A stretch of 63,087 nucleotides of DNA, the filler included, from Octopus bimaculoides (Eukaryota), in assembly GCF_001194135.2 (NCBI RefSeq). It is 8 parts of 8 records of this genome, joined end to end, with 100 filler letters (N's around TTAATTAATTAA, not from the genome) between each part and the next. Parts side by side here need not be neighbours in the genome. Positions count along the whole stretch, not along the records: positions 1 to 19,443 come from NC_069006.1; 7 more parts are not named here. One strand, 5' to 3'. The notes below the pieces were generated by a model, which was given only the letters and a program-made list of their open reading frames with translations, ran no database searches and had not been told where the DNA came from. This document shows, piece by piece, positions 1-19,443 of this stretch (positions within the stretch are counted from its first letter, which is position 1; each line of letters opens with the position of its first letter). A program made the translations under genes and the position numbers.

Positions 1-651
1 TACACATTTTTTTTTCAAATTTCCGTGAAAAAAAAATTTTTTAATTATTTATTTTTAATCTGTATATAAGGAAAAATAACGAAAAATTATTTTGGATCAC
101 TTATGATTTATTATGAAGTTACTGAGAGATATGATGGTTACTGAAAATAATTAATGATAGAAAAGCGGAATAACATCATGAACGAAGTATTTCAGGTAAG
201 AAATAAGTGACAGGTACCTTGGAGTACAATCAACGTATATTTTCGTTCAAATATATATTTACTAGACATCTCTGAATGAAAATATACAGGATAATATGTT
301 AAGAGGTTAAAGGTCAATGATGAGATTGAGATTCTCTTTAAAGGTCAAAATATGTCACTGTAATGTGGTCAGTGGTTATACCTTAGAAGGTCTGGAACCA
401 ACAGACCTCGAAACTAGAAAGAGGTGAGTTTTTAAAGCTGATGGTAGGTTCAAATGGAGTTTAGAACTGACTGTCTCATGTGATTTATTTGGAGGCTGCG
501 ATTGGTTAGTTTGCATATTGAAATGCGATAGAGTAAGAGACAAATTGCGCCAATACCAACCAATCACAGTGGTGGACACATCGGGGTCGAAAGCAGTGCC
601 CAAAGGTTAGCTGTTACCTGCTACGTTCATATGTATGTATATATAATAGAG

Positions 652-1218
652 GGATCTTTTTTAAAACGGGGGCCACATTTTTCATTAACGAAACACTTTG
701 AAACTTGGAACACTGGTAGAATGTGTCATAAAAAACATCTTTTTCTCTTAGTCTTCTTAAAAAAAAAAAGAAATCCATAAATTATTCCATGTTAAAGTTG
801 TCGTATTTCTGTAATTTCAACCAATCACTGACGTCCATTCAGCCGATATACATTAAGTGCCGACTACATAAACAAACGATTCTGAAACAATTAACCCTAA
901 CTCTAACCCTAACCCTAACCCTAGGGTTAGGGTTAGGATTAGGGTTAAAGCAAATTTAAAATGAAAAAAGCAAATAAAACGAAGAATCGTTTGTTTATGT
1001 AGTTGGCACTTAATGTATATTGGCTGAATGGACGTCAGTGATTGGTTGAAATTATCAAAATAACGCAATTTTTTACATGAAATAAATTCGAATACAAAAA
1101 TATTTTTCTATTCTATAACACAAAATAGATAAGTATACGAAGTTTGAAAGTCTTTCCGTACCAAAAACACTACGTAAAACATTAATGAAAAATGTGGCCC
1201 CCGTTTTAAAAAAGATCC
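652..1218. mobile_element. Non-autonomous TIR DNA transposon (MITE) with nested internal inverted repeat and telomeric-repeat core; Merlin-, hAT- or P-type by TSD length
   Basis: Perfect 37-bp TIRs (652-688 GGATCTTTTTTAAAACGGGGGCCACATTTTTCATTAA and its reverse complement at 1182-1218). 8-bp direct repeat TAATAGAG on both flanks (644-651, 1219-1226). Internal 72-bp inverted repeat at 812-883/983-1054. No ORF. Confidence 0.9.
892..947. repeat. Interstitial telomeric-like repeats (CCCTAA)n-CCCTAGGG-(TTAGGG)n
   Basis: Sequence taaccctaactctaaccctaaccctaaccctagggttagggttaggattagggtta, symmetric about CCCTAGGG at 919-926. Confidence 0.9.
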
Positions 1219-1598
1219 TAATAGAGAAAGGAAGTTCATTATGCTTCACTGCAAACTTATTGGCACTCAGTTGCTAAAAGAAAAGGACATCTTTCAATCT
1301 TTGTTTAACACTGTCACTATTTTTCCAAATCTTGCTGCATTTCATACAGGATTTTCGCTCTTCCAAAGTCAACTTGGTGCATAACTTGAACTATCCTTTT
1401 TCGATTGTACATTTTAGCCTGAAAAGTTTGACTTGTATGCTAGAAAATCACAGTAATCAATTACAAGCTTGATACGAAATGCTCCAGCATGGCCCGCAAT
1501 CCAATGACTGAAATTAGTAATACAATGAAAGAGCGGTTAGAATGTGCAATGTTACATACTTAAATTGCTCCGTACAATAATTCTACCTTTGTTTCTAG

Positions 1599-1716
1599 TT
1601 GGACAACTATTCTTCAGGAAACTAACAGAATTAAGTGACAAGTATGTTGTTATTGGGACTTGCTACTCCAAAGATGAACCTCAACTTTATAAATTCGATT
1701 TGAAAACGGCAGCAAA
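1599..1716 (+). CDS. RmlD-like copy 1, first recognisable coding exon (xGQLFFRKLTELSDKYVVIGTCYSKDEPQLYKFDLKTAAK)
   Basis: TTTCTAG acceptor, GTAGGT donor at 1717; homologous to 18421-18527 on the minus strand. Confidence 0.8.
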
Positions 1717-2361
1717 GTAGGTTTCAGTTATTTTCTTTTAACTTTTATAAGGAATATTCTAAAAGAATATGTAACTGAACTTATATTGAGTGCTCTATTA
1801 TTTTGAGCAAATATATATATAAATGTGTTTTTATATTATTAATAAATTCATAAAATTATCAATAATATTCATGCTTAATTACGCATAAATTTTTATATGC
1901 ATTTATATTCACATGTATCTTTATCTACATTCATAGTTCTCAGCTGTTGTTTGTCTTTTTTCTTACTCGTTTCACTCAGACTGTGATCGTGTTGGGGGCA
2001 CTCTTTTAAAGAATTTTCAGTCGAATGTATTGAACTCAGTTGTTTTTTTAAAGCCTGGTACTTACTTTATTAGAATCTGTTGCCAAACTGCTAAGTTATG
2101 GGATTGTCAAACAGCAGAGGGGGGTTGTACACAAACACAATGACACACATCCGCTGAAGACATGATAGATCGTTGACCTAACACCATTCAATTTTTTTTC
2201 TCCGTGTTTTTCTCCTTGTTTTCTCCGTATTCTTTCTGTTGAAGAGCGTAGCTCGAAACGTTAAAGACATTCTGTATTCCCGAGCATCAAACTAATACAT
2301 CCTTTTGTTGTTTACACCACCTGTCCTCGTCTGTTGTTGTTTTTTTTCGTACATTCTCCCT

Positions 2362-2394
<33 letters not shown>

Positions 2395-5300
2395 GATGGA
2401 CTTCTTTCAGTTTCCATCTACCAAATCCACTCACAAGGAGGGGAACTTTCTAAGTACAATCCCATGGTCATCCATGACCGAAGGGGTTCTTTACCCTATT
2501 TTGTGGTTATGAGATAACAGAGATGGTGGTATGTGTAAGCAGAGATGATGACAATGATGGTAGTGGTGGTGGTTGTGGTAACAATCCAACTACCTGTTGT
2601 ATTGCTGGTAACAATACTCTAATTCACTAATCTCCAATGTGTCTTCATTACAGGGACCCAGCATATGTGGATCTGCTTTTGGATGCCTGCAAACCCCATG
2701 TGGTCATTGTATGTGGGGCCATGACCAATGTAAACTTGTGCGAATCGGAAACAGAGTTGGTTTGTTGCAGATTTTTTTCATTGTTGTTAAATTGCTGTTG
2801 TTATGGATTTGGGTTTTGTTGTTGTTGTTGCTGTTAAGATATTTTCTTATCCATGTTCCTTAACCCAACATCAGACCTTTGATTAAAGATGTTCTAGTGG
2901 CATAGAGAAGGGAGGCTGATATGCATGGGCAACTGCTGATCATCCATAAACAACCTTGCCCAGACTTGTACCTTGGAGGGGAACTTTCTAAATGGAATCC
3001 CATGGTCATTCATGACCAAAGGGGTTCTTTATCCTATTTGGTGGTTATGATGACAAAGATGGTGCTATGTGTCAGCAGAGATGCTGGCAGTGGTGGTGGT
3101 GTGACCATCCCATTTTCCATTTCAGACATGGTGTATCAAGGAATACATGACCTAATGTGTTCTTTTTTATTGTTTAGTTCCGATTCAGCTTTCATCCCTG
3201 ATCTCGCAGAACTATGGCTGAAAAAGTTCCAAATATGACCATCCCATCTTTTTTATTGTTGTTGAAATATTTTTTGTCCTTGTTGCTTAACCCGCACATC
3301 AGACCTTTGATCAAAGATGTTCCAGCCATGACCATCCCATCTTTCATTTCAGACATAGTGCATCTAGGAATACATGGTCTAATGTGTTCTTCCTTGTCAT
3401 TTAGTCCCGATTCAGCCATGACCCCTGAGCCAGACCTATGACTGAAAAAGTTCCAAATATGACCATTCCATCTTTTTTTTTTTTTTTTTTTCAGACATCA
3501 ATGTTTTGAAACTGACCTATTTTCCATTACATTTCAGACAGATTTGGTGCTGAGTTTTGAAGCAGAAATATCGTTATAGCAAATATTCTGCTCAATACCA
3601 CAGATTTGCTTGTTACTTGCTTGACCATAACCACTTGAGCATGTCCCTTAGTGGCTGACAATATGTGCATTTCTGATCATGAACAGGAGTAGTAGGGGAG
3701 GGGGAATCATCATAGCCATGTATTGAGAGGGATTCTTTGGGGTTTGAATAAATGTAATAAAAGCAAAGTTTGAAGGAAACATTAGCCGTTTTTCACACTT
3801 TCTAGGGGTTAACAAATAGGAAATAACAGTTGGTACCCAAGGACAAAAATCGTGTTACACAATATAATCAGCTGTTTAATTAGTCATTCAGTCAATAATC
3901 AACCAGCTAACTTGGTCAAAGTCCTTTATGATCCCTTCCATCAATCACTTTATAATCCTTTCCTGTAATCCCCTTTACCTTTCCCCATATTTTCCCTAAT
4001 TCATGTTCATTCTTCTAATACCTTGCTCTTCATGTTTGTTCATTGCAGGCTTATCTTATTAACCGAGACAGTATTGAACAGTTAGGGAAACAAACCAAAA
4101 AGCATGGTGCCAAGTTGATCTTCTTCTCAACCAATTATATCTTCAGTGACCCTCTCAAACCAGATTTACCCCAAGACAGAATCGATATGTTAGGTTAGTA
4201 TTTAGATCTATACCTTCTTAAGTAAAAGTAAAGTTCCTTTCCGAGTCATATAGACTCATAGGGCTGGTTTCTCGGTTTCCATGGCGTATATATGCCCCAC
4301 CTGGATGGTCTGTCACAGGGTTATTCATTTTTGCCAACTGAGTGGACTGGAGCAACGTGAAATGAAGTGTTTTTACTGAAGAACACAACACGTCATCCAC
4401 TCTGGAAATCGAAACCTCAAGCTTACAATCATGAGTCCAACACCTTAGCCACTAAGCCATGTGCCTGTACCCATACCTTCATAGATTGCATTAATTTCTT
4501 GGTAATATTGTCATTGTGGAGGCACATGGCTTAGTGGTTAAGGTGTTGGACTCCTGATCATAAGATTGTGGTTTCAATTCCTGGACCAAGCGATGCATTG
4601 TGTTCTTGAGTGAAACACTTCATTTAACATTGCACCCAGTCCAATCAGTTGGTAGAATTGACTAATACTCTGACAGACTTATATCCCATTCAGGAAGGAA
4701 TATAAATGTCACAGAAAAAACAGGAAACCAGCCCTATGATTCATCATCATCATCATTGTTTAATGTCCATCTTCCATGCATGCATGGGTAGGATGATTGA
4801 CAGGAGCTGGCCAGGTAGAAGACTACCCCAGGCTNNNNNNNNNNGACAGGAGCTGGCCAGGTAGAAGACTACCCCAGGCTACTGTGTCTGTTTTGGCAGG
4901 GTTTTTATGGCTGGATGCCCTTCCTAACACCAACCACTGTGTAGCACCTACTATAGCCTTGGGCTGACCAAAGCCTTGTGAGTGGACTTGATTGATGGAA
5001 ACTGAAAGAAGCCCACTGTGTATGTGTGTGTGTGTTTCTGTCTGTGATGTCTCCCCCACCACTGCTTGACAACCGATGCTGGTGTGTTTATGTTCCTGTA
5101 ACTTAGCAGCTTGGCAAAAGAGACTGATACAATAAATACCAGGCTTTAGAAAACAAGTACTGGGATCATTTCTTCAAAGCAGTGCTCCAGCATGGTCACA
5201 GTCTAATGGCTGAAACAGGTAGAAAACAAAAATTTATGTTTCAAACATTGAATTCTGATGGAAGGTTTTAACTGAGATCCCTTTAAAACTGGGAATTTCT

Positions 5301-8300
5301 ATCATGGGACCAACGGTGGGTTCAGGCTGGTTGGTATCAAACAGGTTAACTAATATTTGATATTCCTGTGATTTCTTTGTAGCTAATGATGTTGGTATAA
5401 AGGAAGATGCACGTCCCAACTGTGTGAACATCTATGGTAAATCTAAGCTGGATTCTGAGAAAGTATTCCAAGATAATGACACTAATGTTTTAATTATACG
5501 CACTTCGGTGAGTATGGGGTAAACATTACATATCTTTCTCTTTAAGACACAACTGGGGATTGAAGATATGTACAGGGTGATTGAAAAGTAATTCCCTATT
5601 TTAAAATACTTATAGATTGTTTATTAATTGTAATTTTTTTCTCAAATTTTTTGTGTTTGGTTTTTGAAGTATGAGCATTTATTCTTTAATTATATTGCTC
5701 ATGTCATTAACAAATAACGGACTGCCCACTTTCCCAGGAGAGGGATGGGTCATTGTTGTCTGCATAAGTGGCCAGCCAGAAGTCCCAACTTAACACCCTG
5801 TGACTTCTTTCTTTGGGGTTGGTTAAAGGAACAAGTCTACTGTACCAAACCAAAGACTTTGGAAGAACTTGAAGGGCAAATATGAGAAGTTATGTCTTCT
5901 ATCACACAAGATTTTCTGGTGAGATCTGTTGGTGCAACTCTTGGGCGACTCAAGAAGCTGGTGGCGACATCTGGAGCCCAAATCAAATTTTAAAGAAAAC
6001 CTCATACTAAAAGTTTTCCTTTCATAACCACTGACGTGTTATGTAAGTAATAATTGCGTTAATTTGCGTTAATGGCAAAACCTGGTCTACGATTAATTCT
6101 TTATTTTGTATATTTTCATTTGTCTTTCTCGTTTATATTCTGGTGTGGGCTGAATTATTCTGGAAAACATTTCTTTTGTGGTTTGATCGTAGATGGTCTA
6201 TTTCTAGCATAATGGATGTCCACTTAGTCGTCATCCCTTCTTATACGTATGTAATACAATTTTTCTGAATTTTCAGATTTTTCTTTATGCTAGACCACTG
6301 GTTTTAAATTGGTGTTAATTAAATTAATATTCAATTTATCTATATGTATATATATCCCTCTCTCTCTCTCTCTCTTTCGGAGAGAGGCACAAACACATAC
6401 ACAGACATATATACACACGGCAGTAACTTCCGCCTACCAAATTCAATCGCAAAGCTTCGCAGGATGTGTGTGTGTGTGTGTACATGAATGTAATTAAGCA
6501 CATCCTCAAATTAGCACGCATGTCGCTCCAATTTTAGGAGGACATTCGTCATGACCCTAGCTGCATTTTTGTCAACTTATTTTTCCGCGAATAGCAGTAA
6601 AAATAAATTTTCAACCAAAACTTTTAACAATTTTCAAGTTAGATAAATCCACCATTATTTACAACGGAGCTATGTCCCCTTCTAGGGACGAGTAAGTTTT
6701 TTAAGACTTTTGTTTTTTATTTTTCCATCGATGTTTTGTTGATATACGGACACACATACGAATATGTATTTAATGTGTCTTTCTTGCTTTAAGAAAGAAG
6801 TTTGTGTGATTTAAGGGAGGTTTAACTATTATTTCTAGCAAAATTGAGCAAACATTTATTAATGAGATATGTTGTTGTTTGTTGCCAAGATTTTAATGTG
6901 ATTTGATGTGACTTTTCCAGGGTGTATATGGACATGATAGCAGAAAAAGGAATTTTGTGTACCAAGTTATAGGGAATCTTCTGGCTGGGAATAAGATGAC
7001 GCTGCTTACAGATGAAGTAAAATTCCATATTCTTCATTTTAAACTACCTTTTTTTTTAAAGTTTTCATTTGTTAATTTATAAATTAGACTTGATTAGAAT
7101 TATCGTATTCTTTTATCTGTTTCAGGCATTTAACTGCAGCCATGCTGGAGCACTGCCTTTAGTCAAACAAATCGACCCCATGACTTATTCTTTGTAAGCC
7201 TAGTACTTATCCTATCGGTCTTTTTTGCCGAACTGCTAAGTTACGGGGACGTAAACACACCCACATCAGTTGTCAAGCAATGGTAGGGAGACAAACACAG
7301 ACACACACACACACACAGACACACACACACAGACACACACACACAGACACACACACACACACACACACACATACATACACACATATACGACTGGCTTTTT
7401 TTAGTTTCCGTCTGCCAAATCCACGCTCAGAAAGCTTTGGTCGGCCTGAGGCTATAATAGAAGACACTTGCCCAAGGTGCCACGCAGTGGGACTGAAACG
7501 GAACCGTGTGGTTGGTAAGCAAGCTACTTACCACACAACCACTCCTGTGCCTATATATGTGTTTTTTTTTTTTCTGGGGGGGTTTTTTGCAATTGAAATT
7601 TAATGGTTCTAATGGACTTGATGCTGTTTAATGAATTATCAACTCTTGGGATAATAATAATAATAATATTATTATTTACTGTGATGAGGAAGAGATATCT
7701 TATGGTACAGAGAGTGACAAACTTCTACTTAACATTTTAATGACACAATAATTTATTCCATTTTATAAACTGTTTGTAGTTACTGTTTACTGGTTACAGA
7801 CCATCACTAGTTTTCTTGGCTTCTATTGTTTCACTTCTATTTAATATTTGTTCATTATTTGCTTATGAACTAATTATGGAAACTATGCTGATATATAAAC
7901 CTAATACTTAAAAATTTGACCATAGCAGGCAAATCTGTGTAACTGCTGATATACAGAGGTAATGATCAAAATATCCTTTGGTTGGAAAGTCTACATGAAT
8001 TCAACCAGTTTATATTACCCAGACACTGAATATATTTAATTCTTGGAAGTGAGATTGTGAAGATTGAGAAATGTTGAACATGTTCCAACTTAACCCTTTA
8101 GCATTCAAATTATTCTGTCGAGCTTAAAGCTTAATTATTCTAATTGGTTTGAATTAATCATGCATTATCTTGCTACTTCTAGATTTCAATGATGTGACAG
8201 TATATTTTTAGAATGTCATTGTATGGTAGATGTGAGAGGTTAGATCTGGCCAGTTTGAACATAAAACATATAGAATATTTGGGTGTGATATGACTAGTTT

Positions 8301-9228
8301 AAATGCTAAAGGGTTAACTGTAAAAAAAAAAAAATAAAACCATTAAGAAGTATGGAAAATATAAAGATAAAGCTTTATCAGTCATGCATCCTATAAAACA
8401 TGTATTTGCTTATTTATATGTCCATTTGTTCATAGATCCAATGTCCAGTTTACAGTGAGGATTTGTGTAGGGCCACACTTGAGCTGATGGAGAAAAACTG
8501 TTCAGGAATCTACCACGTTGTAGGACCAGAGGCATTCAACAAATACACATTTGGTGTGAAGATTGTAAGTTGGTACATTTTATTTAAAAACATTCTAATA
8601 TGGTACTATTGGTGTAGACACAATACTTTTTCTGCTCTCATAAATGAACTCTTCATATATATATATATATATATGTATGTATATATTATAGAGGCAGATA
8701 GATAGATGGAATGATGTGTCATTTAATAATGCCTTGTGATAAATGGCTTTTGTTTTTACCTTGATGGTTTACTTGATCTATTATTGAGTAAAAGATTTAT
8801 CTTTCACTAATTTCAGGCTGAACTCTTCAATGTTGATACTTCATTGTTAGTTCCAATGTCATCAGAAGAACTCAAATTACCTGCCAAAAGGCCGTATTTT
8901 GCAGCATTGTCCACAGCAAAATTTCGGTAAGTATAACACCCAAAACAGTTATATTCAGTAATAATAATAATAATAATAATAGGATAAATTGATAGAGAAA
9001 GAAATGACAGAAAAGTTTAAGGTAGAGTACTTGCACAGATTGAGACTGATCCTTAAAGTGATATAAGTATATATAATTGTTTTATATAATTGTATAAGTA
9101 TATATAATTGTTTTATTTCTATTTTTAGCAAAGAATTCCCAGAATTCAAGTTCCATAATGTATCTGCCGCTGTTGAGGATTGGCAAACTAAACAAATGAA
9201 GGGTAGAAATATCTTGTCTGATTTCTAA
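1599..9228 (+). CDS. rmlD: RmlD-family (dTDP-4-dehydrorhamnose reductase-like) extended SDR, copy 1; 5'-partial; join(1599..1716,2654..2759,4049..4193,5383..5507,6921..7016,8436..8564,8817..8926,9129..9228)
   Basis: Eight exons with GT-AG introns and compatible phases splice into one open frame of 308 aa plus stop. RmlD-like motifs appear in order: KPHVVIVCGAMTNVNLCESE, AYLIN, GAKLIFFSTNYIF, EDARPNCVNIYGKSKL (YxxxK), IIRTSGVYG, NFV, DEIQCPVYSEDL, GIYHVVG, LPAKRP. Family call is by motif recognition; MAT2B is the alternative animal member of the family. Confidence 0.9.
2160..2365 (+). mobile_element. Penelope-like repeat fragment with hammerhead-like motif
   Basis: CTTTCTGTTGAAGAGCGTAGCTCGAAACGTTAAAG at 2232-2266; the same family recurs on the minus strand at 28345-28545, 35525-35700 and 57294-57390. 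Confidence 0.6.
2654..2759 (+). CDS. RmlD-like copy 1 exon (DPAYVDLLLDACKPHVVIVCGAMTNVNLCESETEL)
   Basis: ATTACAG acceptor, GTTTGT donor; matches the RmlD PDVVINxAAxTxVDxxE region. Confidence 0.9.
4049..4193 (+). CDS. RmlD-like copy 1 exon (AYLINRDSIEQLGKQTKKHGAKLIFFSTNYIFSDPLKPDLPQDRIDML)
   Basis: TTGCAG acceptor, GTTAGT donor; carries the catalytic Thr motif STNYIF. Confidence 0.9.
4225..4470 (-). mobile_element. tRNA-derived SINE (family B), also present at the equivalent intron position of copy 2 (16705-16945)
   Basis: Reverse complement has a tRNA-like head (GGCTTAGTGGCTAAGGTGTTGGACTC...TTCGATTTCC) and a shared body/tail. Confidence 0.75.
4522..4740 (+). mobile_element. tRNA-derived SINE (family B)
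   Basis: A-box-like GGCTTAGTGG and B-box-like GGTTTCAATTCC, then the same body as 4225-4470. Confidence 0.75.
4741..4940 (-). mobile_element. RTE-type LINE 3' end with (GAT)n tail
   Basis: (CAT)n followed by a conserved block ending GGATGCCCTTCCTAAC; similar pieces at 13030-13200 and 15045-15090. Confidence 0.65.
5383..5507 (+). CDS. RmlD-like copy 1 exon (ANDVGIKEDARPNCVNIYGKSKLDSEKVFQDNDTNVLIIRTS)
   Basis: TTTGTAG acceptor, GTGAGT donor; carries YGKSK. Confidence 0.92.
5570..6050 (+). mobile_element. Decayed Tc1/mariner-superfamily transposon
   Basis: TA-CAGGGTG start; translation KWPARSPNLTPCDFFLWGWLKEQVYCTKPKTLEELEGQI* with an in-frame stop. Confidence 0.8.
6921..7016 (+). CDS. RmlD-like copy 1 exon (GVYGHDSRKRNFVYQVIGNLLAGNKMTLLTDE)
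   Basis: TTTCCAG acceptor, GTAAAA donor; phase 0 on both sides. Confidence 0.9.
7105..7555 (-). mobile_element. tRNA-derived SINE (family A, octopod OR-like)
   Basis: Reverse complement of the head-core-(GT)n-tail structure seen at 10588-10985. Confidence 0.85.
8094..8313. mobile_element. piggyBac-type MITE
   Basis: CCCTTTAGCATT...AATGCTAAAGGG termini flanked by TTAA at 8090-8093 and 8314-8317. Confidence 0.8.
8436..8564 (+). CDS. RmlD-like copy 1 exon (IQCPVYSEDLCRATLELMEKNCSGIYHVVGPEAFNKYTFGVKI)
   Basis: TTCATAG acceptor, GTAAGT donor. Confidence 0.92.
8817..8926 (+). CDS. RmlD-like copy 1 exon (AELFNVDTSLLVPMSSEELKLPAKRPYFAALSTAKFR)
   Basis: TTTCAG acceptor, GTAAGT donor; PAKRP motif. 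Confidence 0.92.
9129..9228 (+). CDS. RmlD-like copy 1 terminal exon (KEFPEFKFHNVSAAVEDWQTKQMKGRNILSDF*)
   Basis: TTTTTAG acceptor, TAA at 9226-9228; AATAAA follows at about 9251. Confidence 0.88.
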
Positions 9229-9335
9229 TAAGTCCTTTAAAGAGAAAGGAAATAAAGATATATTGATGAATATTAATGAAATGAAACTTGATACTTCATT
9301 TGAAGCAGTTTTTCAGGGTACTTTGTATTATATAT

Positions 9336-9446
9336 AAGGGTGTGTGGAAAAGTTCCCGGCTTTAAGGTTACTGGGAAAGGCCTGGTTAGAGGTCTAACCT
9401 TCCGATGCCTTTTATAATGCCAAGAACTTTTCAGCACCCCCTTGTA
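9336..9446. mobile_element. Short mariner-derived MITE
   Basis: TIR-like GTGTGGAAAAGTTCCCGGC...GCCAAGAACTTTTCAGCAC; same family as 12781-13002 and 28884-29107. Confidence 0.7.
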
Positions 9447-9799
9447 TTTTGGGGAGATTCAGTGGTACACATATCCAAGATGTGCAAGTTATTTGTTTAC
9501 AAGGTCACTTTAAAAAAAAATCATTTAATTGGGGTTTGTTAGAAATGAGGTCATGAGAGGATTGGCATAACAATCAAATGTGATTGATATGAGAGGAAAA
9601 ATTATATCCATTGCCAAAGAATTTCCCATTTCTGTCCATCCCAGTATTCTTAATGTTAAGTCACGCATAACAATACAGAGAATAGAGTTACCAGATATAG
9701 AAGCCTGTCATATATGTATGTATGTGTGTATGTATGTATGCATGTATGTACTTGTGTGTGTGTTTGTGTTTGTCCTCCCACCATCACTTATATCATTTA

Positions 9800-9952
9800 T
9801 AAAAGCAGACATGGGCAGTCTGCAGTGAGCAGAACCTTCTGAACAGCATGGCTAATGAAAAATTATTTCAAATTTTTCAGTAGTATGGCCCATCTCATGA
9901 TGTGCCATATCTCCTGTTGCCTGCTTCTCATAAAAGCTTGCCCATGCCTGAT
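9800..9952. mobile_element. hAT-like MITE remnant in the 3' flank
   Basis: CAGACATGGGCA...TGCCCATGCCTG termini; inverted homologue at about 12241-12390. Confidence 0.55.
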
Positions 9953-10029
9953 AAAGGGTCATTTATAAAAAGGTCATTTATATTATAATTAAAATTACAA
10001 TTTTATAGTATGCAATTATTTGTATACAT

Positions 10030-10155
10030 ATGCCATGGGTATATGGCGTAGTGGTTAACAGTGCGAGCTACTAACCCCAAGATTCTGAGTTCGATTCCAA
10101 GCAGTAACCTGAATAATAATACCTTTGGAATGAGAACCCAGGTTTGAAATTTCTC
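10030..10155 (+). mobile_element. tRNA-derived SINE (family C)
   Basis: TGGCGTAGTGG A box and GAGTTCGATTCC B box, followed by a non-tRNA body. Confidence 0.65.
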
Positions 10156-10587
10156 CAAGACACCTGATGGAGGACTGACATCCTGTATTTTCTTTTACTG
10201 AAAGCCAGAAACTTTTCAGCACACCCTCATATACAAAGCTATTTGTATACAAATTCACAATTTTAAAGAAGTGCATTTATATTCTAATTTGGTTTTCCCA
10301 ATCTTTGGTTTTTTGTTTCCATGGATTAAAATAATTAAATAAGTAAATGACTTTTGTTGTTGATGATTATTTCAAGCAGGATACCTCATCATCTCTATTG
10401 TGACATTAATTATCTCCTCTAAGTTTCTCTCTGTCTTCTTATTGTGAGCACTCATTCAAATGTCAGTTGCATCACACACAGTTACTAAACTATGTTATAT
10501 TATAATTTAAATTACAATTTTATAATATGCAATTATTTGTTAATTATTTGTTAAACAGCTTGAAAAATGAAGTAAAAAATTAATATT

Positions 10588-10985
10588 GCAGCCAGTGGCT
10601 GTGTGGTAAGAAGCTTGCTTCCCAAGCACATGGTTCAGGGTTCAGTTCCAGTGTGTGGCACCTTGGGTAAGTATCTTCTAGTATAGCCTTGGGCCAACCA
10701 AATCCTTGTGAGTGTATCTGGTAGATGAAAACTGAAAGAAGCCCATTGTATAAATGTATAAACTGTGGTTTGTGTTTGTCCCTCCCACTTGACAACCTGT
10801 GTTGATGTGTTTACGTTCGTTCGTATTCAGCAAAAAGCAGTTCAGCAAAAAGATAATAATAGAATAAGTACCAGAGTTTTAAAAAAATTGGTCCTGGGGT
10901 CAATTCATTTGACTAAAGTTTTCTTCGAGGCAGTGCCCCAGCATGGCCACAGTCGAATGATTGAAACAAATTAAAAGGTAAAAGA
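10588..10985 (+). mobile_element. tRNA-derived SINE (family A), near full length
   Basis: GTGGCTGTGTGGTAAG head, GGTTCAGTTCC B box, core GTGGCACCTTGGGTAAGTATCTTC, tail CCCAGCATGGCCACAGTC. Truncated copies at about 1965-2150, 4940-5230 and 11290-11545. Confidence 0.85.
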
Positions 10986-11705
10986 AGTTATGTAATATAG
11001 AAACAAGATAACTTATCTTGTCTTTTACTACTTTTACTTGGTCAGCATTTGCACTAAAAGTACATTAATTCCCGACTATTTTGAGAAAATAAAACACTAA
11101 AGCACAAAAGCAGAATTGGGGTTTGTTAGAAATGAGGTCATGAGAGGATTGGCATAACAATCATATGTAATTGATATGAGAGGATTGGCATAACAATCAT
11201 ATGTAATTGATATGAGAGGAAAAATTATATCCATCCCAGTATTCTTAATGTTAAGTCACGCATAACAATACAGAGAATAGAGTTACCAGATATAGAAGCC
11301 TGTCATATATGTATGTATGTATGCATGTATGTACTTGTGTGTGTGTTTGTGTTTGTCCTCCCACCATCACTTGACAACTGATGTTGGTGTGTTTACATTC
11401 CTGTAACTAAGCGGTTCAGCAAAAGAGACCAATAGGATAAGTACTAGGCTTACAAAGAATAAGTCCTGGGGTCGATTTGTTTGACTAAAGGCGGTGCTCC
11501 AGCATGGCCACAGTCAAATGACTGAAACAAGTAAAAGAACAAAAGAAAGAAGAAATGTAAGCATTTTATACATAAAGCACAGCCGTACATATACATTCAT
11601 ACAGACCTGCTTGCATGTATACATACACACATACATATATATATACTTGGATTTACTCCAAGTCACAATACTGCAGTGATCATCATGAGATGTGCATCAG
11701 TTTAA

Positions 11706-11922
11706 CCCTTTAGCATTCAGATTGATTTATCAAATATAATGCTTGTTTATCTACATTGTTTTAAAATTACATATTATCCTGTAGCTTCAAGATTTTGAAG
11801 ATATGATCATTTATTTTTTGAACGACATTGTAGGGTAAGTGGGAGAGGCTCGATCTGGCCAGTTTGAACATAAAACTGGTAGAACATTTGGGCTGGATAT
11901 GGCCAGTTTAAATGCTAAAGGG
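11706..11922. mobile_element. piggyBac-type MITE (second copy)
   Basis: Same termini as 8094-8313; TTAA at 11702-11705 and 11923-11926. Confidence 0.8.
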
Positions 11923-12636
11923 TTAAAGCCAACTGCAGCAATATCAATTATTGCGTGAAATATGAATCAACAACAAGCTATTTATTCATTTATTTTAATT
12001 CATGAAAAAAACCCCAAAAGATTGAAAAACCCAAATTGAAATACCAATGACCCTCTGTAGCAGAGATTCTCAACCATTTTTCTTTACTTATGAACCCCTT
12101 TGATTGCTATCTTATTTTGGTGAACCCTCCTTAGCCATTTGATGTCTAAAAATTAGTTTTATAGAAACTTCTTTCAAAATTCCTCTAATACACAAATTGC
12201 TTTGAACTCAAATAACCCTTTTATAAATGACCCTTTTTATCAGATATGGGCAACCTTTTCTGAGCAGCAGGTCACATGAGAGGTGGCTCATCTTGAGGTG
12301 AGCCACACTACAAAAACATTAAAAATAATTTTTCATTAGCCATGTCATTCAGAAGACTGGTGGCTGCCAGTTGCTCATGTCTGCTTTTAAAAAATGTTCT
12401 TTTTATTAATGACCATTCATATATACAGGTGACTTGTATACTTGTATACATCTTGGCCATGTGTACCATTGACTCTTCACAGAATACAAACAAAATCATC
12501 CCCAAAATATATAATATAAAGAACCCTGAAAAATTGTTTCTAAAGTAGCAGCAAGTTTCAGGTCACTTATATTAATTAATACACTAAATAATACACTATC
12601 AATATAACTTTATTTCCTTTCTTTTTAAAGGACTTA

Positions 12637-12736
12637 TTAGAATTCAGGCAAGATTTTTCCATTTTTATTTTCTTTACTTTTCCAATCTCTTATAGCAGCA
12701 GATACATCAAGGAACTTGAACTCTGGGACTTCCTTG
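12637..12736 (-). CDS. RmlD-like copy 2 terminal exon (KEVPEFKFLDVSAAIRDWKSKENKNGKILPEF*)
   Basis: 77/100 nt identical to 9129-9228; same length and stop position. Confidence 0.88.
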
Positions 12737-13707
12737 CTGAAAATAGAAATAAAAAAATTCATGTGTTTATATAATGTTTTTATGAGGATGTGCTGAAAAG
12801 CTCCTAGCTTTAAGGATATTGCGAAGGGCCTGGTTGCAGGCCCAACATTCCAAGTTCTTTTACAGGGCTTTGAAAAACTGAAGGACCACTGCAATAAGTG
12901 TGTGAGTCTGAGAGGGGAACATGTTGAATAATATCATAATTAACTGATTCTCCTGCATCTTCTTTCACCCAAAACCAGGAACTTTTCAGCACCTCCTTGT
13001 AGTATATTTCATGCAATATATCCTCCAACATACTGTCATCATCATCATTTAACGTCCATTGTCCATGCTGGCATGGGTTGGACGGTTTGACAAGGTCTAG
13101 TAAGCTGAGGAGCTGCACCAGACTCTAGTCTGATTTGGCATGGTTGGATGTCAAATCAGTTGGATGTCCTTCCTAATGCTAACCACTCTAGGAGTGTAAT
13201 AAGTGCTTTTACGTGCCACTGCATCGGTGTCAGTTTGCATGAACCAATATCTGCCACTACTATGATTTCACCCAGTCAAGTACTGGCCTTGTGCTAGAAT
13301 TAGAAAGACTCATCATAAGTGTTGTTGTTATTATTATCATTACTATTATTATTAATATTATTATTATTGTACATGGCTGTGTTAGTAGTTATGAAGAATT
13401 GGTGAAAGTGTATGTCAAAGAAAGAATATACTTACCGAAATTTTGCTGTGGACAATGCTGCAAAATACGGCCTTTTGGCAGGTAATTTGAGTTCTTCTGA
13501 TGACATTGGAACTAACAATGAAGTATCAAGATTGAAGAGTTCAGCCTGAAATTAGTGAAAGATAAATCTTTTACTCAATAATAGATCAAGTAAACCTTCA
13601 AGGTAAAAACAAAAGCCATTTATCACAAGGCATTATTAAATGACACATCATTCCATCTATCTATCTGCCTCTATAATATATACATATATATATATATATG
13701 ATGATAT

Positions 13708-13739
<32 letters not shown>

Positions 13740-16700
13740 CATCATCATCATCACCATCATCATCATCATCNNNNNNNNNNNNNNNNNNNNNNNNNNNNNN
13801 NNNNNNNNNNNNNNNNNNNNNNNNNNNNNNNNNNNNNNNNNNNNNNNNNNNNNNNNNNNNNNNNNNNNNNNNNNNNNNNNNNNNNNNNNNNNNNNNNNNN
13901 NNNNNNNNNNNNNNNNNNNNNNNNNNNNNNNNNNNNNNNNNNNNNNNNNNNNNNNNNNNNNNNNNNNNNNNNNNNNNNNNNNNNNNNNNNNNNNNNNNNN
14001 NNNNNNNNNNNNNNNNNNNNNNNNNNNNNNNNNNNNNNNNNNNNNNNNNNNNNNNNNNNNNNNNNNNNNNNNNNNNNNNNNNNNNNNNNNNNNNNNNNNN
14101 NNNNNNNNNNNNNNNNNNNNNNNNNNNNNNNNNNCGGTACTGGCAATGGTCACGCTCAGGATGGTACATCTTATGTGCCACCCGCACAAGAGCCAGTCCA
14201 GGGGCACTGGCAACGATCTCACTTGGCTTGCCGGGTCTTCTCGCGCACAGCACATTTCCAAAGGTCTCGGTCAGTAGTCATCGCCTCGGTGAGGCCCAAT
14301 GTTCGAAGGTCTTGCCTCACCACCTCAGCCCAGGTCTTCCTGGGCCTACCTCTTCCACGGGTTCCCTCAACTGTTAGGGAGTGGCACTTTTTCACGCAGC
14401 TATCCTCATTCATTCTCACCACATGTCCAAACCAGCGCAATCGTCTCTCTTGCACACCACTACTGACGCTTCTTATATATATATATATGAAGAGTTCGGT
14501 TATGAGAGCAGAAAAAGTATTGTGTCTACACCAATAGTACCATATTAGAATGCTTTTAAATAAAATGTACCAACTTACAATCTTCACACCAAATGTGTAT
14601 TTGTTGAATGCCTCTGGTCCTACAACGTGGTAGATTCCTGAACAGTTTTTCTCCATCAGCTCAAGTGTGGCCCTACACAAATCAATACTGTAAATTGGAC
14701 ACTGGATCTATGAATAAACAAATATACAAATATGTAAATAATAGACAAATATTAAACAAGAAAAATAGATTAACACAAAACCTGAGGGAACTACTGATGT
14801 TCTGTCTCAGTAAATAATAACCACAAACAGTTTATAGAATGGGATAAATTATTTTGGTATTCTGAGTAGAAACCTTTGTCACTCTCTGTTGAAGAGTTCT
14901 CTAAACCATAAGACATCTCTTCATCACAGTAAATAGGGCTCAGTCTCACGTCCCCCCCCCCCAACTCTGTTTATTATAATTCTCCATTCCATAATACAGG
15001 ACAAGTTCAAGACTGAATGCCTGACAACAGCAGAGATCAATATCGTCATTCTTTAACATCCATTTTCCATGCTGGCATGGGTTGGCTGGTCATGCAGGCA
15101 TGTGTTCTTGTAGCTAAATTGAGGAATTCAAAGAAAGATTCCAAATGCAAAAGCAGAGTCCAGGAACCAGAGGTCTAAAACTAAACCTTGCAAAGAAAAA
15201 AAAAACGTTTAATAAGGAAGAAAATTGAAAATTATACTGTCATCTGAGAAGAGGCTTTGTTTAATATGCAGAATAGGAGTATAGCAAGAATATTTCTCTC
15301 CCTATACCCAACGTAAACTATGGGTTCACAAGAGATTCAATAGGATCACAGACAGGCTGATAGAGGATCATTTCATATTTAGTAACCAATGTGCTGTAGT
15401 AGTGTGGTTATGAAGGGCAGAAAAAGTGTCTTACCATGAGCTGGCAAATGACTTCAAAAAGGAAACTATTCAAATTCTGACTGAAATTTATCCTGTCACC
15501 TTATGACACTTTCTGTACTCAACCTCCTGGTCAAAAACCTAGAATACACAAGGACTCCATCTGCATGTCTGTTCTCTCTGGTTGACTTTCTATCGTCCAA
15601 ATAATGGTATTTCTATTTCATTACCTGGGATCACTTCCAGCACATCGTCCCCTAATGTTTTCCTTCACTCCTGACACATCACCCACTGGGCCACAAGTAA
15701 TTAGCAGTAAAATCTATTATAAAATAAATCCTTTAAAATATTCAGAAATTCGTTAGATGTAATTGATAGATTCTGTCACCGAGATGACTTTACCAGCAGA
15801 GGAGGAGGGTGTTTTAAAAAGGATAGCTATCAGAAAGTAAGAAAGGGGTAAAAAAAAAAAAAAGGGATTCTTTCTTTGAGTGAACAGCAGATTATGTGAG
15901 ACTTGTATATCAAGTGTTATCTTACATCGTAGAGAAACAACTGTCAAGAAATTATCCTCAAATTATAAATTAACAAGTGAAAAAGTAAAAAAAAAAAAAA
16001 AAGGTAGTTTAAAGTGAAGAATATGGAATTTTACTTCATCTGTAAGCAGCGTCATCTTATTCCCAGCCAGAAGATTCCCTATAACTTGGTACACAAAATT
16101 CCTTTTTTTGCTATCTTGTCCATACACACCCTGGAAAAGTCACATTAAATCACATTAAAATCTTGACAACAAACAACAACATATCTCATTAATAAATGTT
16201 TGCTCAATTGACCATACCAGTGAAGTCTTCTGTCTTACACACTATATTTGTTACCTCTTATGTCCATCAAGAAAAGACACACAAAGGACATAGATATGCA
16301 CACCCCTCCTCACTTATCAACCAAACATCATCACAATTTCAACACCTTATCAGAGTCAATGATTAGTTTTTAATACTGCAGTATGCTCAATAACCAATGA
16401 ATAAATCTGGTGAATGAATGTAGATACTATTGAAATCTAATCCAATCCATGGAGGAAAACTCCATGAGTTCAATCTTCAGGTGTGTCTCAATGAAAAAAA
16501 GTTTACCCCATACTCACCGAAGTGCGTATAATTAAGACATTGGTGTCAACATCTTGGAATATTTCTTCAGAGGCCAGTTTAGCTTTACCATAGACATTCA
16601 CACTGTTGGGAGGAGCATCTTCCTTTATACCAATATCATTAGCTACAAAGAAAGGAATATCAAATATTATTTAAAACACTTTCACAGTCCACAAGTACAT

Positions 16701-18527
16701 CTGTTGCTAGGATGTTGCACTCATGACTTCTAGATTGTGGTTTCAATTCCTGGACTGGTCGGTGCGTTGTGTTCTTGAGCAAAACACTTCATTTCACGTT
16801 GCTCCAGTCCACTCAGCTGGCAAAAATGAGTAACCCTGTGACAGACTGGTCTCCCATCCAGGTGGGGCATATATACGCCATGGAAACCGAGAAACCAGCC
16901 CTATGAGTCTATATGACTCGGAAAGGAACTTTACTTTTACTTAAGAAGGTATAGATCTAAATACTAACCTAACATATCGATTCTGTCTTGGGGTAAATCT
17001 GGTTTGAGAGGGTCACTGAAGATATAATTGGTTGAGAAGAAGATCAACTTGGCACCATGCTTTTTGGTTTGTTTCCCTAACTGTTCAATACTGTCTCGGT
17101 TAATAAGATAAGCCTGCAATGAACAAACATGAAGAGCAAGGTATTAGAAGAATGAACATGAATTAGGGAAAATATGGGGAAAGGTAAAGGGGATTACAGN
17201 NNNNNNNNNNNNNNNNNNNNNNNNNNNNNNNNNNNNNNNNNNNNNNNNNNNNNNNNNNNNNNNNNNNNNNNNNNNNNNNNNNNNNNNNNNNNNNNNNNNN
17301 NNNNNNNNNNNNNNNNNNNNNNNNNNNNNNNNNNNNNNNNNNNNNNNNNNNNNNNNNNNNNNNNNNNNNNNNNNNNNNNNNNNNNNNNNNNNNNNNNNNN
17401 NNNNNNNNNNNNNNNNNNNNNNNNNNNNNNNNNNNNNNNNNNNNNNNNNNNNNNNNNNNNNNNNNNNNNNNNNNNNNNNNNNNNNNNNNNNNNNNNNNNN
17501 NNNNNNNNNNNNNNNNNNNNNNNNNNNNNNNNNNNNNNNNNNNNNNNNNNNNNNNNNNNNNNNNNNNNNNNNNNTATATGCACACACACACATATGCAGA
17601 CACACATACGCACACACCTACCCACACACAAAGACGAAGGTAACTATTTCAATAACAATAACAACAACAACAACATTAAAACCAACTAAGCAACAATAAA
17701 TTAGAGTGCAACAAACCAATTCTTTTTCTGATTCACACAAGTTTGCATTGACCATGGCCCCACATACAATGACCACATGGGGTTTGCAGGCATCCAAAAG
17801 CAGATCCACGTATGCTGGGTCCCTGTAATAAAAACAGATTGGAGATTAGTGCATTACACTGTTGTTACCTGCAATACAAAAGGCAGCTGGATTAGGAAAA
17901 TCTCTTTCCATAAACCCAGTGATGATTTGTAGACGGAAAGTTTCAACAAAAGTTCACCATCAAAGATCAGCTCCGAGCAGAATGTAAAACATTCACACAG
18001 AGACTCAGAGGGACATATGAGCACACACACGCACACAAACAACATGCACACACACACACACACACAAACAACATGCACACACACACACACACACAAACAA
18101 CATGCACACACACACACACACACACATGTATGTGTGCTCACACACAAGCACACATCCATGTGTGTGTGTGTTAGTTTTAGTTTCTTTAAGTCATGTAAAA
18201 GAACTCAGAAAGTTGGGCCTCCAACCAGGCCTTTTGCAATCCCCTTAAAGCCAGAAACTTTTCAGCAACCCCTCATATTGTGTGTAATGGAGGCATACTG
18301 GCAGTGCTGAGTCTAACTGTGAAAGGATATATTTTCTAATGGTGTAATAGTATACATCATACAAATAGAATTCCAAAATATCATAGAAAAATTTAGGAAA
18401 AAAACCCAACTAAAACCTATTTTCAAATCAAATTTGTAATGTTGAGGATCATTATCTGTGTAGCAAGTGCCAATAACTACGTATTTGTCACTGCGTTCTT
18501 TTAGCAGCCTGTAGAATGTACTTCCAA
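12637..18527 (-). CDS. rmlD: RmlD-family paralog, copy 2; 5'-partial, possibly a recent pseudogene; exons 18527..~18421, 17822..17717, 17113..16969, 16642..16518, 16130..16035, 14707..14579, 13545..13436, 12736..12637
   Basis: The last seven exons have the same lengths, phases and GT-AG sites as copy 1, an open frame, STNYIF and YGKAK. The first recognisable exon lacks 11 nt that include the G of the canonical donor. Confidence 0.82.
12781..13002 (+). mobile_element. Mariner deletion derivative (MITE) in the last intron of copy 2
   Basis: TIRs GTGCTGAAAAGCTCCTAGC / CCAGGAACTTTTCAGCAC; retains the transposase C-terminus LLQGFEKLKDHCNKCVSLRGEHVE*. Confidence 0.8.
13436..13545 (-). CDS. RmlD-like copy 2 exon (AELFNLDTSLLVPMSSEELKLPAKRPYFAALSTAKFR)
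   Basis: 109/110 nt identical to 8817-8926. Confidence 0.9.
13739..14474 (-). mobile_element. 5'-truncated RTE-clade LINE with (GAT)n tail inserted in a copy 2 intron
   Basis: Minus-strand translation QERRLRWFGHVVRMNEDSCVKK...GRGRPRKTWAEVVRQDL...DRDLW*; interrupted by an N gap; absent from the homologous copy 1 intron. Confidence 0.88.
14579..14707 (-). CDS. RmlD-like copy 2 exon (IQCPIYSIDLCRATLELMEKNCSGIYHVVGPEAFNKYTFGVKI)
   Basis: 124/129 nt identical to 8436-8564. Confidence 0.9.
16035..16130 (-). CDS. RmlD-like copy 2 exon (GVYGQDSKKRNFVYQVIGNLLAGNKMTLLTDE)
   Basis: 93/96 nt identical to 6921-7016. Confidence 0.9.
16518..16642 (-). CDS. RmlD-like copy 2 exon (ANDIGIKEDAPPNSVNVYGKAKLASEEIFQDVDTNVLIIRTS)
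   Basis: 108/125 nt identical to 5383-5507; YGKAK intact. Confidence 0.9.
16969..17113 (-). CDS. RmlD-like copy 2 exon, identical to 4049-4193
   Basis: 145/145 nt identical. Confidence 0.8.
17717..17822 (-). CDS. RmlD-like copy 2 exon (DPAYVDLLLDACKPHVVIVCGAMVNANLCESEKEL)
   Basis: 98/106 nt identical to 2654-2759; same splice sites. Confidence 0.88.
18421..18527 (-). CDS. RmlD-like copy 2, first recognisable exon (xGSTFYRLLKERSDKYVVIGTCYTDNDPQHYKFDLK); donor disrupted
   Basis: TTTCCAG acceptor; 81/107 nt identical to the copy 1 exon by manual count. Confidence 0.75.
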
Positions 18528-19144
18528 CTGGAAATAAAGAGATAAATAGTGTAGAGAACATTACAAATATCTATTATAATAAAAGTGAAAGTCAGTCTGT
18601 CTGGGACCCCTGTATCTCAGTCTACATTTGCTCTACATATTATACCTTTTTGGAATCAGGATGATCCCTGGATAGAAAATTTGCCTTTCCTTTGGGATTT
18701 GATTTAAAAGCATTTGTGTTGCTATTTCTAGCAGGAAAGCTTAGCTGATTCATGCCTTCTTGGTTGGCATTTGTCAGATGACACCAGAGATCAAGGGAGA
18801 GATAAATGACATGGTTATAACCGACAGAGTGCCAGTTAAGTATCAAATATATTTTAAGTGTAATTCCTTACCACATTATGTCTCCCTGAATGCCCCTTTA
18901 ACCCCCATTACTTATGTTTGTCTCCTACTATTTCCATCCCCATGTATTTCTGACTTCAGCATTGAGCATCTCTCACATACTACCCACACTTCCCATCACC
19001 TATGCTGCCTCTTACTGCCTCCACCTTCTCACCCACACCCCCCAAAAAAGCCTCTGGTAATTCACCATGGACCATGGCTCCACCTGTATCCACCATTCAC
19101 TGGCCTTCACCTCTAGCCATCTTTATCCATCTACCACTCTCCTT

Positions 19145-19420
19145 CTAAACCCATCAACTCATGACCCCTTTAATTTCATAGTTAAAGGAGAAAAGAGAAT
19201 CACCCTCCTTACCAATGACCTTTAAAGATAGTCACCTCCCCCACTCTTGACCTTTGAAGAAAATCACTGGCTCATTGGTCCTTATCAATTCGTCTAACCC
19301 ATCAACTCGTCACCCCTTTAATTTCACAGTTGAAGGATAAAAGAGAATTGTCCTCCTTGCTACTGACCTTTAAAAATAGTCACCTCCCCACCCTCTTGAC
19401 CACTGAAGAGAATTGCCTAC
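19145..19420. repeat. Imperfect direct repeat, period about 149 bp
   Basis: Units start CTAAACCCATCAACTC (19145) and CTAACCCATCAACTC (19294). Confidence 0.75.
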
Positions 19421-19443
19421 CTGGATCTGTAAAGAGTATCTCC

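Follow-up and report, generated by a model that had tools for sequence, protein, structure and literature searches.

A duplicated RmlC-RmlD fusion gene in Octopus, probably of ancient bilaterian descent and a candidate nucleoside diphosphate-L-rhamnose synthase

Why should an octopus carry a tail-to-tail pair of intron-containing genes for bacterial-looking, RmlD-type reductases, and what might their products do? The question is raised by a locus of Octopus bimaculoides (NCBI RefSeq assembly GCF_001194135.2) at positions 1 to 19,443, taken from NC_069006.1, of a 63,087-nucleotide (nt) stretch of joined genome parts (the window). Self-comparison shows the locus to be an inverted duplication, AT-rich and abundant in microsatellites and other repeats, in which short exons are conserved between the two arms. 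The convergent paralogs described in an initial annotation of this DNA, with eight exons seen in each and stop codons 3.4 kb apart, were recovered at the same coordinates (Table 1). The best explanation for the collected evidence, to which we assign a probability of roughly three in four, is that the pair descends from an ancient bilaterian gene in which RmlC and RmlD are fused, that the gene encodes a nucleoside diphosphate (NDP)-L-rhamnose synthase, and that it was duplicated in Octopus.

Gene models were built from manual reading of the exon junctions combined with tblastn searches that used the O. vulgaris ortholog P0001. Every junction in the two copies, called A and B here, has an AG acceptor and a GT donor, and the exons of copy A in the window splice into 308 amino acids (aa). 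Since the apparent first exon of each copy begins at an acceptor, in mid-codon, and the orthologs have three more exons at the 5' end, neither model represents a whole gene. The proteins nearest to copy A are O. vulgaris CAI9741286.1 (92-93% identity), O. sinensis XP_036369587.1 (82%) and Argonauta hians GAB1602157.1 (56%). The orthologs from O. vulgaris, O. sinensis and Argonauta are 502-507 aa long and place PF00908 (dTDP_sugar_isom, RmlC) N-terminal to PF04321 (RmlD_sub_bind); the two domains occur in one polypeptide in orthologs of both copies, the window holding the PF04321 part only. Mapping on chromosomes resolves the Octopus genes into 11 exons and the Argonauta gene into 12; the eight exons in the window correspond to exons 4-11, and the RmlC domain together with the first part of the Rossmann fold is encoded by exons 1-3. 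A tblastn search with the O. vulgaris N-terminus found no RmlC exons within positions 1-1598 or 18528-19443; intron 3 measures 4.4 kb in O. vulgaris, and the flanks available come to no more than 1,598 nt on the 5' side of copy A and 916 nt past the outer end of copy B. Exons 1-3 of O. bimaculoides are annotated apart, as a 200-aa 'dTDP-4-dehydrorhamnose 3,5-epimerase' (XP_014790046.1) on an unplaced 3-kb contig, L010. Judged by their orthologs, the window genes are the back two-thirds of RmlC-RmlD fusion genes of ~507 aa; the initial annotation had correctly seen eight exons in each copy, and took these for the entire genes, thereby missing the RmlC half and exons 1-3 of 11. Both genes had already been annotated in RefSeq, where XP_014787525.1 and XP_014787528.1 (247 aa each, under the name 'spore coat polysaccharide biosynthesis protein SpsK') match parts of copy A and copy B, respectively, without a single difference and represent truncated models. 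Contig L010 (LGKD02034306.1, model at 1295-3047) contains two runs of N and an intron 1 of 134 nt, compared to 6.3 kb in O. vulgaris; its model is 91-94% identical to O. vulgaris copy A and 87-93% identical to O. sinensis copy B, slightly nearer to A.

The encoded domains are recognized clearly at the level of sequence, fold and catalytic residues. A Pfam search of the spliced 308 aa, which the initial annotation had proposed as a check, returned RmlD_sub_bind with E = 6.5e-49, and the Thr...YxxxK triad noticed there is read as FSTNY together with YGKSK in copy A and YGKAK in copy B. Matches to bacterial RmlC and RmlD in a search of PDB sequences had E values of 1e-23 to 1e-25, the RmlD half matching solved RmlD structures at ~1e-23 and MAT2B at 2.6e-18. 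The AlphaFold model of P0001 has a predicted local distance difference test score (pLDDT) of 91.8 and a predicted template modelling (TM) score of 0.92; in this predicted structure, the C-terminal domain superimposes on RmlD 1vl0 with a TM score of 0.92 and the N-terminal domain on RmlC 1ep0 with a TM score of 0.89 and a root-mean-square deviation of 1.8. Across 17 fusions, O. vulgaris and O. sinensis included (alignment A1), the RmlC residues His63, Lys69, Tyr129 and Asp170 are invariant and align with the columns of Salmonella RmlC 1dzr (His63, Lys73, Tyr133 and Asp170) which we take to be catalytic. The RmlD residues Ser300/Thr301, Tyr339 and Lys343 are invariant in the same 17 fusions and are encoded in both window copies.

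Which relatives are found for the octopus fusion depends on how the search is done. In a word-indexed search with the RmlD half alone, the best matches outside the cephalopods were bacterial or metagenomic, with ~34% identity. This 'bacterial' neighbourhood was misleading and was corrected by an exhaustive HMMER search of the 507-aa protein against 1.84 billion cluster representatives, in which colinear full-length eukaryotic fusions occupied the top, ahead of all bacteria. These included Branchiostoma belcheri (38% identity), Styela clava (36%), Micromonas, Pycnococcus and Pseudoscourfieldia, as well as a squid/cuttlefish cluster with a Sepia pharaonis protein named 'rfbD'. With a second profile search, this set was extended to the annelid Owenia fusiformis, B. 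floridae, B. lanceolatum, Pyramimonas, Prymnesium parvum (protein P0393, 35% identity to octopus across both domains) and many sequences from marine eukaryotes; a profile search with alignment A1 over pre-filtered candidates gave 25 matches and turned up Sepia. Bivalve, gastropod, arthropod, vertebrate, cnidarian and sponge members were absent from the named matches listed, an absence limited by clustering at 50% identity and by unnamed clusters. The squid and cuttlefish relatives are found in read-archive assemblies on contigs of ~2 kb (one sequence on 76 contigs) which, being intron-free and having complete 503-aa open reading frames (ORFs), probably represent spliced transcripts. Sepia pharaonis has two annotated copies on one 3.2-Mb contig (L005; P0314 and P0327), both from truncated models (352 and 442 aa). 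A 502-aa fusion homolog, P0131, lies on a 356-kb contig of the European Nucleotide Archive (L003, from ERZ25072740) that is gene-dense, apparently intron-free, eukaryotic and protist-like, next to genes for VPS13, AIF-1-like, BTB and galactosyltransferase proteins. Longer members of the family are P0139 (868 aa) and the Pyramimonas protein P0368 (873 aa), which has PF01041 (DegT-type aminotransferase) in addition and thus points to a three-domain enzyme for an amino-deoxysugar.

The age of the gene can be read from its introns. Animal proteins were mapped exactly to their genomes, and the intron positions were projected onto a common alignment. All ten octopus introns are shared with Owenia in the same column and phase; Styela clava shares five of its eight introns with octopus, and Sepia has all eight octopus introns that fall within its partial model, plus one extra. 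The single intron of amphioxus is not shared with octopus. Assuming ~1,500 equally likely sites and ignoring intron-site preference, the chance of such sharing is ~6e-26 for Owenia and ~2e-10 for Styela. A neighbour-joining tree of the full-length proteins (475 columns, 100 bootstraps) unites the cephalopods at 100%, the cephalopods with Owenia and P0129 at 95%, and these with Branchiostoma at 57%, and it separates all eukaryotic fusions from the bacterial ones. P0129, the sister of Owenia, is a transcript from Logan ERR6349604. A neighbour-joining tree of the RmlD domain, tried as a test of a single animal clade, could not decide the matter with 4-18% support at its deep nodes, and the full-length tree is the better one for the purpose. 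Because introns are shared across phyla and the tree position agrees, the gene appears at least bilaterian in age and patchily retained. On this evidence it is ancestral to bilaterians and was lost from most animals, with retention in cephalopods, an annelid, three amphioxus species and Styela. By the same comparison, its 11-exon structure is placed before the annelid-mollusc split and half of its introns before the protostome-deuterostome split. The initial annotation had left the choice between a horizontally acquired and a patchily retained gene; patchy retention stands, and a bacterial import into an octopus ancestor does not, by the shared introns and the eukaryotic relatives.

The most durable alternative concerns the deep origin only and is otherwise compatible with bilaterian ancestry: an RmlC-RmlD fusion could have been transferred from a marine alga or bacterium into the animal stem or an early bilaterian, to be inherited vertically thereafter with many losses. 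We regard this as a serious possibility, somewhat short of even odds. Haptophytes, prasinophytes and marine eukaryotic metatranscriptomes are rich in family members; the algal RmlCD is of bacterial origin according to Wagstaff et al.; fusions of 441-494 aa are known from bacteria; and the named matches listed contain no cnidarian, sponge, arthropod or vertebrate member. However, the deep nodes of the neighbour-joining trees are weakly supported, and the absences are subject to the limits of clustering, unnamed clusters and matches listed that were given above.

Among known systems, the closest parallel is the RmlCD of P. parvum (Wagstaff et al. 2019, J Biol Chem, PMC6556577), which agrees with the octopus protein in the order of RmlC before RmlD, in approximate length and in catalytic residues, and falls into the same eukaryotic fusion clade. 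The sequence compared, P0393, is a genome-annotated P. parvum protein and may differ from the assayed CAMPEP_0191228776. RmlCD fusions are described from Haptophyta and Gymnodiniaceae (PMC6556577). The octopus genes differ by their animal host, their 10 spliceosomal introns and span of 26-45 kb, the ~15-aa insertion in the reductase of cephalopods, and the lack, in octopods, of the first glycine of GxxGxxG. By architecture and family membership they are a new, animal member of the fusion kind known in haptophytes and dinoflagellates. Bacterial RmlC (Salmonella 1dzr) and RmlD (Salmonella 1kbz, Clostridium 1vl0) are matched by the octopus folds with TM scores of 0.85-0.92 and with the catalytic residues in place, whereas identity is 21-35%, the RmlD half scores under the equivalog cut-off, and the tree sets the bacterial fusions apart. 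Plant NRS/ER (UER1), the C-terminal domain of RHM and mimivirus L780 accomplish the same overall conversion of NDP-4-keto-6-deoxyglucose into NDP-L-rhamnose. Set beside octopus by description, the NRS/ER-type enzymes combine the epimerase and reductase steps in one short-chain dehydrogenase/reductase (SDR) domain, without a cupin RmlC; we take the relatives of the nematode reductase RML-4 to be of this type. The nematode L-rhamnose pathway, RML-1 to RML-4 (Feng et al. 2016; PMC10473587), resembles the octopus case in its animal host, its RmlC-type epimerase and the presumed end product. In contrast to the octopus fusion, RML-3 is a stand-alone RmlC and RML-4 is not fused with RmlC. Bacteria resembling Chlamydiales are the inferred source of RML-3, acquired after the Chromadoria/Dorylaimia split, and RML-4 is related to eukaryotic and viral reductases (PMC10473587).

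The conserved catalytic residues and the fold suggest an active enzyme; the nucleotide specificity, the supply by TGDS and any rhamnose product considered here are predictions. TGDS, the animal 4,6-dehydratase, would supply UDP (uridine diphosphate)-4-keto-6-deoxyglucose, a compound that animal TGDS is reported to make (PMC12488480). The RmlC domain would catalyse 3,5-epimerisation of UDP- or dTDP (deoxythymidine diphosphate)-4-keto-6-deoxy-D-glucose, and NADPH-dependent 4-reduction by the RmlD domain would then afford NDP-beta-L-rhamnose, probably in the UDP form. The only characterised member of the family, P. parvum RmlCD, converts dTDP- and UDP-6-deoxy-xylo-hexos-4-ulose in the presence of NADPH into the matching beta-L-rhamnose nucleotides (PMC6556577). 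A route of this kind might still work in cephalopods, at least one annelid, amphioxus and some tunicates, which would then have rhamnose glycoconjugates that nobody has sought, and vertebrate TGDS might be the surviving half of a lost pathway; we offer this extension tentatively, as conceivable rather than probable. An undescribed deoxysugar pathway in an animal, as the initial annotation had envisaged, stays a reasonable inference.

A number of observations weigh against ancient ancestry or against rhamnose synthesis. The RmlD half scores 165.2 bits against NCBIfam TIGR01214, under the equivalog cut-off of 224 bits. Octopods have another residue in place of the first glycine of GxxGxxG, the cofactor motif (SSKGQVG in octopus, SAKGQVG in Argonauta, GASGQVG elsewhere), a change that could weaken NADPH binding; the other two glycines are kept, and the motif straddles the exon 3/4 junction such that only its final Val-Gly is encoded in the window. 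All cephalopods have the insertion of ~15 aa after STNYIF. The sole RmlC-exon model of O. bimaculoides (XP_014790046.1, on L010) has Arg in place of the catalytic His63, reading RGLRIAAY where O. vulgaris and O. sinensis read RGLHIAAY. In this assembly, the reading frame of copy B is disrupted. Styela occupies a long branch of uncertain position in the full-length tree, and the deep nodes on the RmlD-domain tree are as weak as indicated above. A literature search, finally, gave no clear report of rhamnose in cephalopods. As to the insertion itself (DPLKPDLPQDRIDMLANDVG, residues 306-325 of P0001), it lies between STNYIF and YGKSK, spans the exon 6/7 junction (window 4172-4193 and 5383-5420 in copy A) and is modelled with a pLDDT of ~80-86.

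Part of these observations would suit an active enzyme with another role, making 6-deoxy-L-talose, or a D-sugar if the epimerase were inactive, or mainly consuming or buffering the TGDS product, a compound that regulates UXS1. The stereochemistry at C4 is not readable from sequence, UDP-4-keto-6-deoxyglucose serves in its own right as an enzyme-rescue metabolite (PMC12488480), and the Arg at His63 in L010 as well as the lack of reported rhamnose in the cephalopod literature are in line with such a role. We nonetheless consider it unlikely, given that the family as a whole retains the catalytic residues of RmlC and RmlD and that its characterised member makes L-rhamnose.

Much less credible is the transfer of a bacterial RmlD-like gene into the octopus or cephalopod ancestor, with introns gained and the gene duplicated afterwards. 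The word-indexed matches of the RmlD half (~34% identity) would support it, and so would a genome survey in which the rml pathway was confined to bacteria, archaea and phages, with no eukaryote among its carriers (bioRxiv 10.1101/854612). Against it stand the precedence of eukaryotic fusions over all bacteria in the exhaustive search, the introns held in common with Owenia (10/10) and Styela (5/8), and the 95% bootstrap for cephalopods plus Owenia inside a clade of eukaryotic fusions only. The metazoan clade found follows the species tree, if sparse rather than widespread, and on this ground, too, bacterial import as proposed by the initial annotation fails. Cephalopod contamination as the source of the Owenia, Branchiostoma and Styela genes is implausible, with chromosomes of 25-62 Mb and identities of 34-46%. 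A non-catalytic regulatory subunit resembling MAT2B, which the UniRef/RefSeq names ('methionine adenosyltransferase 2 subunit beta'), the fold match to MAT2B structures (TM score 0.81-0.85) and the missing first Rossmann glycine of octopods might suggest, is equally remote in view of the fused RmlC domain with intact catalytic residues, an identity to human MAT2B (PDB 30gd, 4ktt, 2ydx) that is the lowest in the set (24% over 275 aligned columns, compared to 33-38% for RmlD-type proteins, one MAT2B sequence included), a dissimilar C-terminus (...KDWQTKQMKAGKFLSEF in octopus, ...SLWPFLIDKRWRQTVFH in MAT2B), and the tree, in which MAT2B, itself without an RmlC domain, falls outside the RmlD and fusion groups. 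What octopus and human MAT2B have in common is the SDR/RmlD_sub_bind fold and a sequence similarity with an E value of 2.6e-18, and the database names reflect automatic transfer on this shared Pfam domain. MAT2B is a stand-alone SDR protein, and in the papers on 4ktt and 4ndn its C-terminal tail is said to insert into the MAT2A dimer. The initial annotation had rightly placed the octopus proteins closer to RmlD than to MAT2B.

The fusion has importance for what is believed about rhamnose in animals. Nematodes have been stated to be unique among known metazoans in having the L-rhamnose pathway, and RmlC-type epimerases to be missing from the remaining eukaryotes (PMC10473587). Searches of the literature for an animal RmlC-RmlD fusion, be it from octopus, amphioxus, annelids or Styela, turned up no description of one. 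The presence of the fusion in cephalopods, an annelid, three amphioxus species and a tunicate contradicts the generalisation to nematodes only. In combination with the 2025 finding on TGDS, it provides a hypothesis of rhamnose synthesis in several groups of marine animals that can be tested in vitro, and it suggests why TGDS is conserved in animals. Public databases list the proteins under misleading names (MAT2B, MAT2B-like, SpsK, rfbD), with truncated models for O. bimaculoides.

The duplication behind the convergent pair belongs to the Octopus lineage. The exon blocks of the left and right halves of the locus are 77-100% identical in reverse orientation, with most of the intron sequence unmatched. 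O. sinensis shows the same convergent pair, 8.4 kb apart, and copies A and B each have a separate ortholog in O. vulgaris and in O. sinensis. An assembly artefact was considered and rejected: since the introns differ, per-copy orthologs exist and the layout in O. sinensis is convergent as well, the duplication is genuine. In the RmlD-domain tree, window A pairs with O. vulgaris A, window B joins the B copies of O. vulgaris and O. sinensis (89%), and Argonauta remains outside both (100%); from this pairing, the duplication is placed after Octopus and Argonauta had diverged and before O. bimaculoides parted from O. vulgaris and O. sinensis. Identity between the copies varies exon by exon, with 100% in exon 6 (4049-4193 compared to 16969-17113) and 93.6% over ~500 nt of flanking intron, 99% in exon 10, 86% in exon 7 and 77% in exon 11 (9129-9228 compared to 12637-12736). 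This mosaic suggests gene conversion between the paralogs.

The two copies differ in their integrity, the initial annotation having described both paralogs alike; this is borne out for copy A, which is intact, and overlooks a lesion in exon 4 of copy B. When the two window copies are aligned at the nucleotide level with O. vulgaris A and O. sinensis B, the lesion is seen at the 3' end of that exon (Table 1). Splicing at the nearest usable GT makes the exon 111 nt long instead of 118 nt (-7 nt), with a frameshift and a stop in exon 6 as the consequence. Copy B is otherwise open, and its ratio of nonsynonymous to synonymous substitution rates (dN/dS) is 0.40 relative to the O. sinensis B ortholog, compared to 0.33 for copy A relative to O. 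vulgaris A (overall range 0.33-0.51). From the open remainder of copy B and a dN/dS similar to that of copy A, the lesion would be either recent or else an assembly error. Copy A looks functional.

Table 1. Positions in the window of the two fusion-gene copies, the sequence between them, and gaps and repeats at the locus.
Feature	Positions	Strand	Description
Copy A	1599..9228	+	Exons 4-11 of 11-exon RmlC-RmlD fusion gene; RmlD domain from Val199 to stop; intact in window
Copy A exons	1599-1716, 2654-2759, 4049-4193, 5383-5507, 6921-7016, 8436-8564, 8817-8926, 9129-9228 (stop)	+	
Copy B	12637..18527	-	Exons 4-11 of paralog
Copy B exons	18417-18527, 17717-17822, 16969-17113, 16518-16642, 16035-16130, 14579-14707, 13436-13545, 12637-12736 (stop)	-	
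Spacer between the two stop codons	9229..12636		3,408 nt, repeat-rich
Lesion, 3' end of copy B exon 4	18410..18430	-	11-nt deletion and donor GT-to-AT, relative to O. sinensis B ortholog
10-N gap	4835-4844		Copy A intron 6; exact 36-nt duplicate flanks (4799-4834 = 4845-4880)
Gap	13771-14134		Copy B intron 9; 364 N, inside ~765-nt stretch 13710-14473
Gap	17200-17574		Copy B intron 5; homology to copy A intron reaches gap edge at 17199
Dispersed repeat pairs	9527-9789 and 11114-11372; 7108-7311 and 11336-11539; 8090-8317 and 11702-11926; 4948-5231 and 10678-11544		

All three assembly gaps are intronic, and with the exons of both copies complete and in order on either side, no coding sequence is touched by them. 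The exact duplicate flanks of the 10-N gap in copy A imply an unmerged contig overlap, across which the sequence is continuous. The stretch around the gap in copy B intron 9 has no counterpart in the 252-nt intron 9 of copy A and presents itself as an insertion: 8403-8669 of copy A matches 14740-14474 of copy B, and 8655-8935 matches 13709-13427. The ~15 nt of copy A that align on both sides of it (8655-8669) could be a target-site duplication. The insertion holds an ORF ending ...RRLRWFGHVVRMNEDS...GRGRPRKTW...DRDLW, which we liken to the C-terminal tail of ORFs of invertebrate retrotransposons of the long interspersed nuclear element type; Pfam gave nothing significant for this ORF. A short ORF in copy A intron 7 (5671-5885, plus strand; ...WPARSPNLTPCDFFLWGWLKEQVY...) looks like a decayed remnant of a Tc1/mariner-type transposase, its weak match to the C-terminal part of Pfam DDE_3 (E = 0.1, positions 107-145 of 146) falling short of significance.

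Simple repeats comprise (CA)n and (TA)n microsatellites and a 29-nt CA-rich tandem repeat (7289-7383, 18022-18168, 17583-17630, 13672-13739, 2364-2393), together with a perfect 36-nt tandem duplication at 11140-11220. Dispersed repeats of 77-89% identity, common to the introns of copy A and the intergenic spacer (Table 1), are probably interspersed elements.

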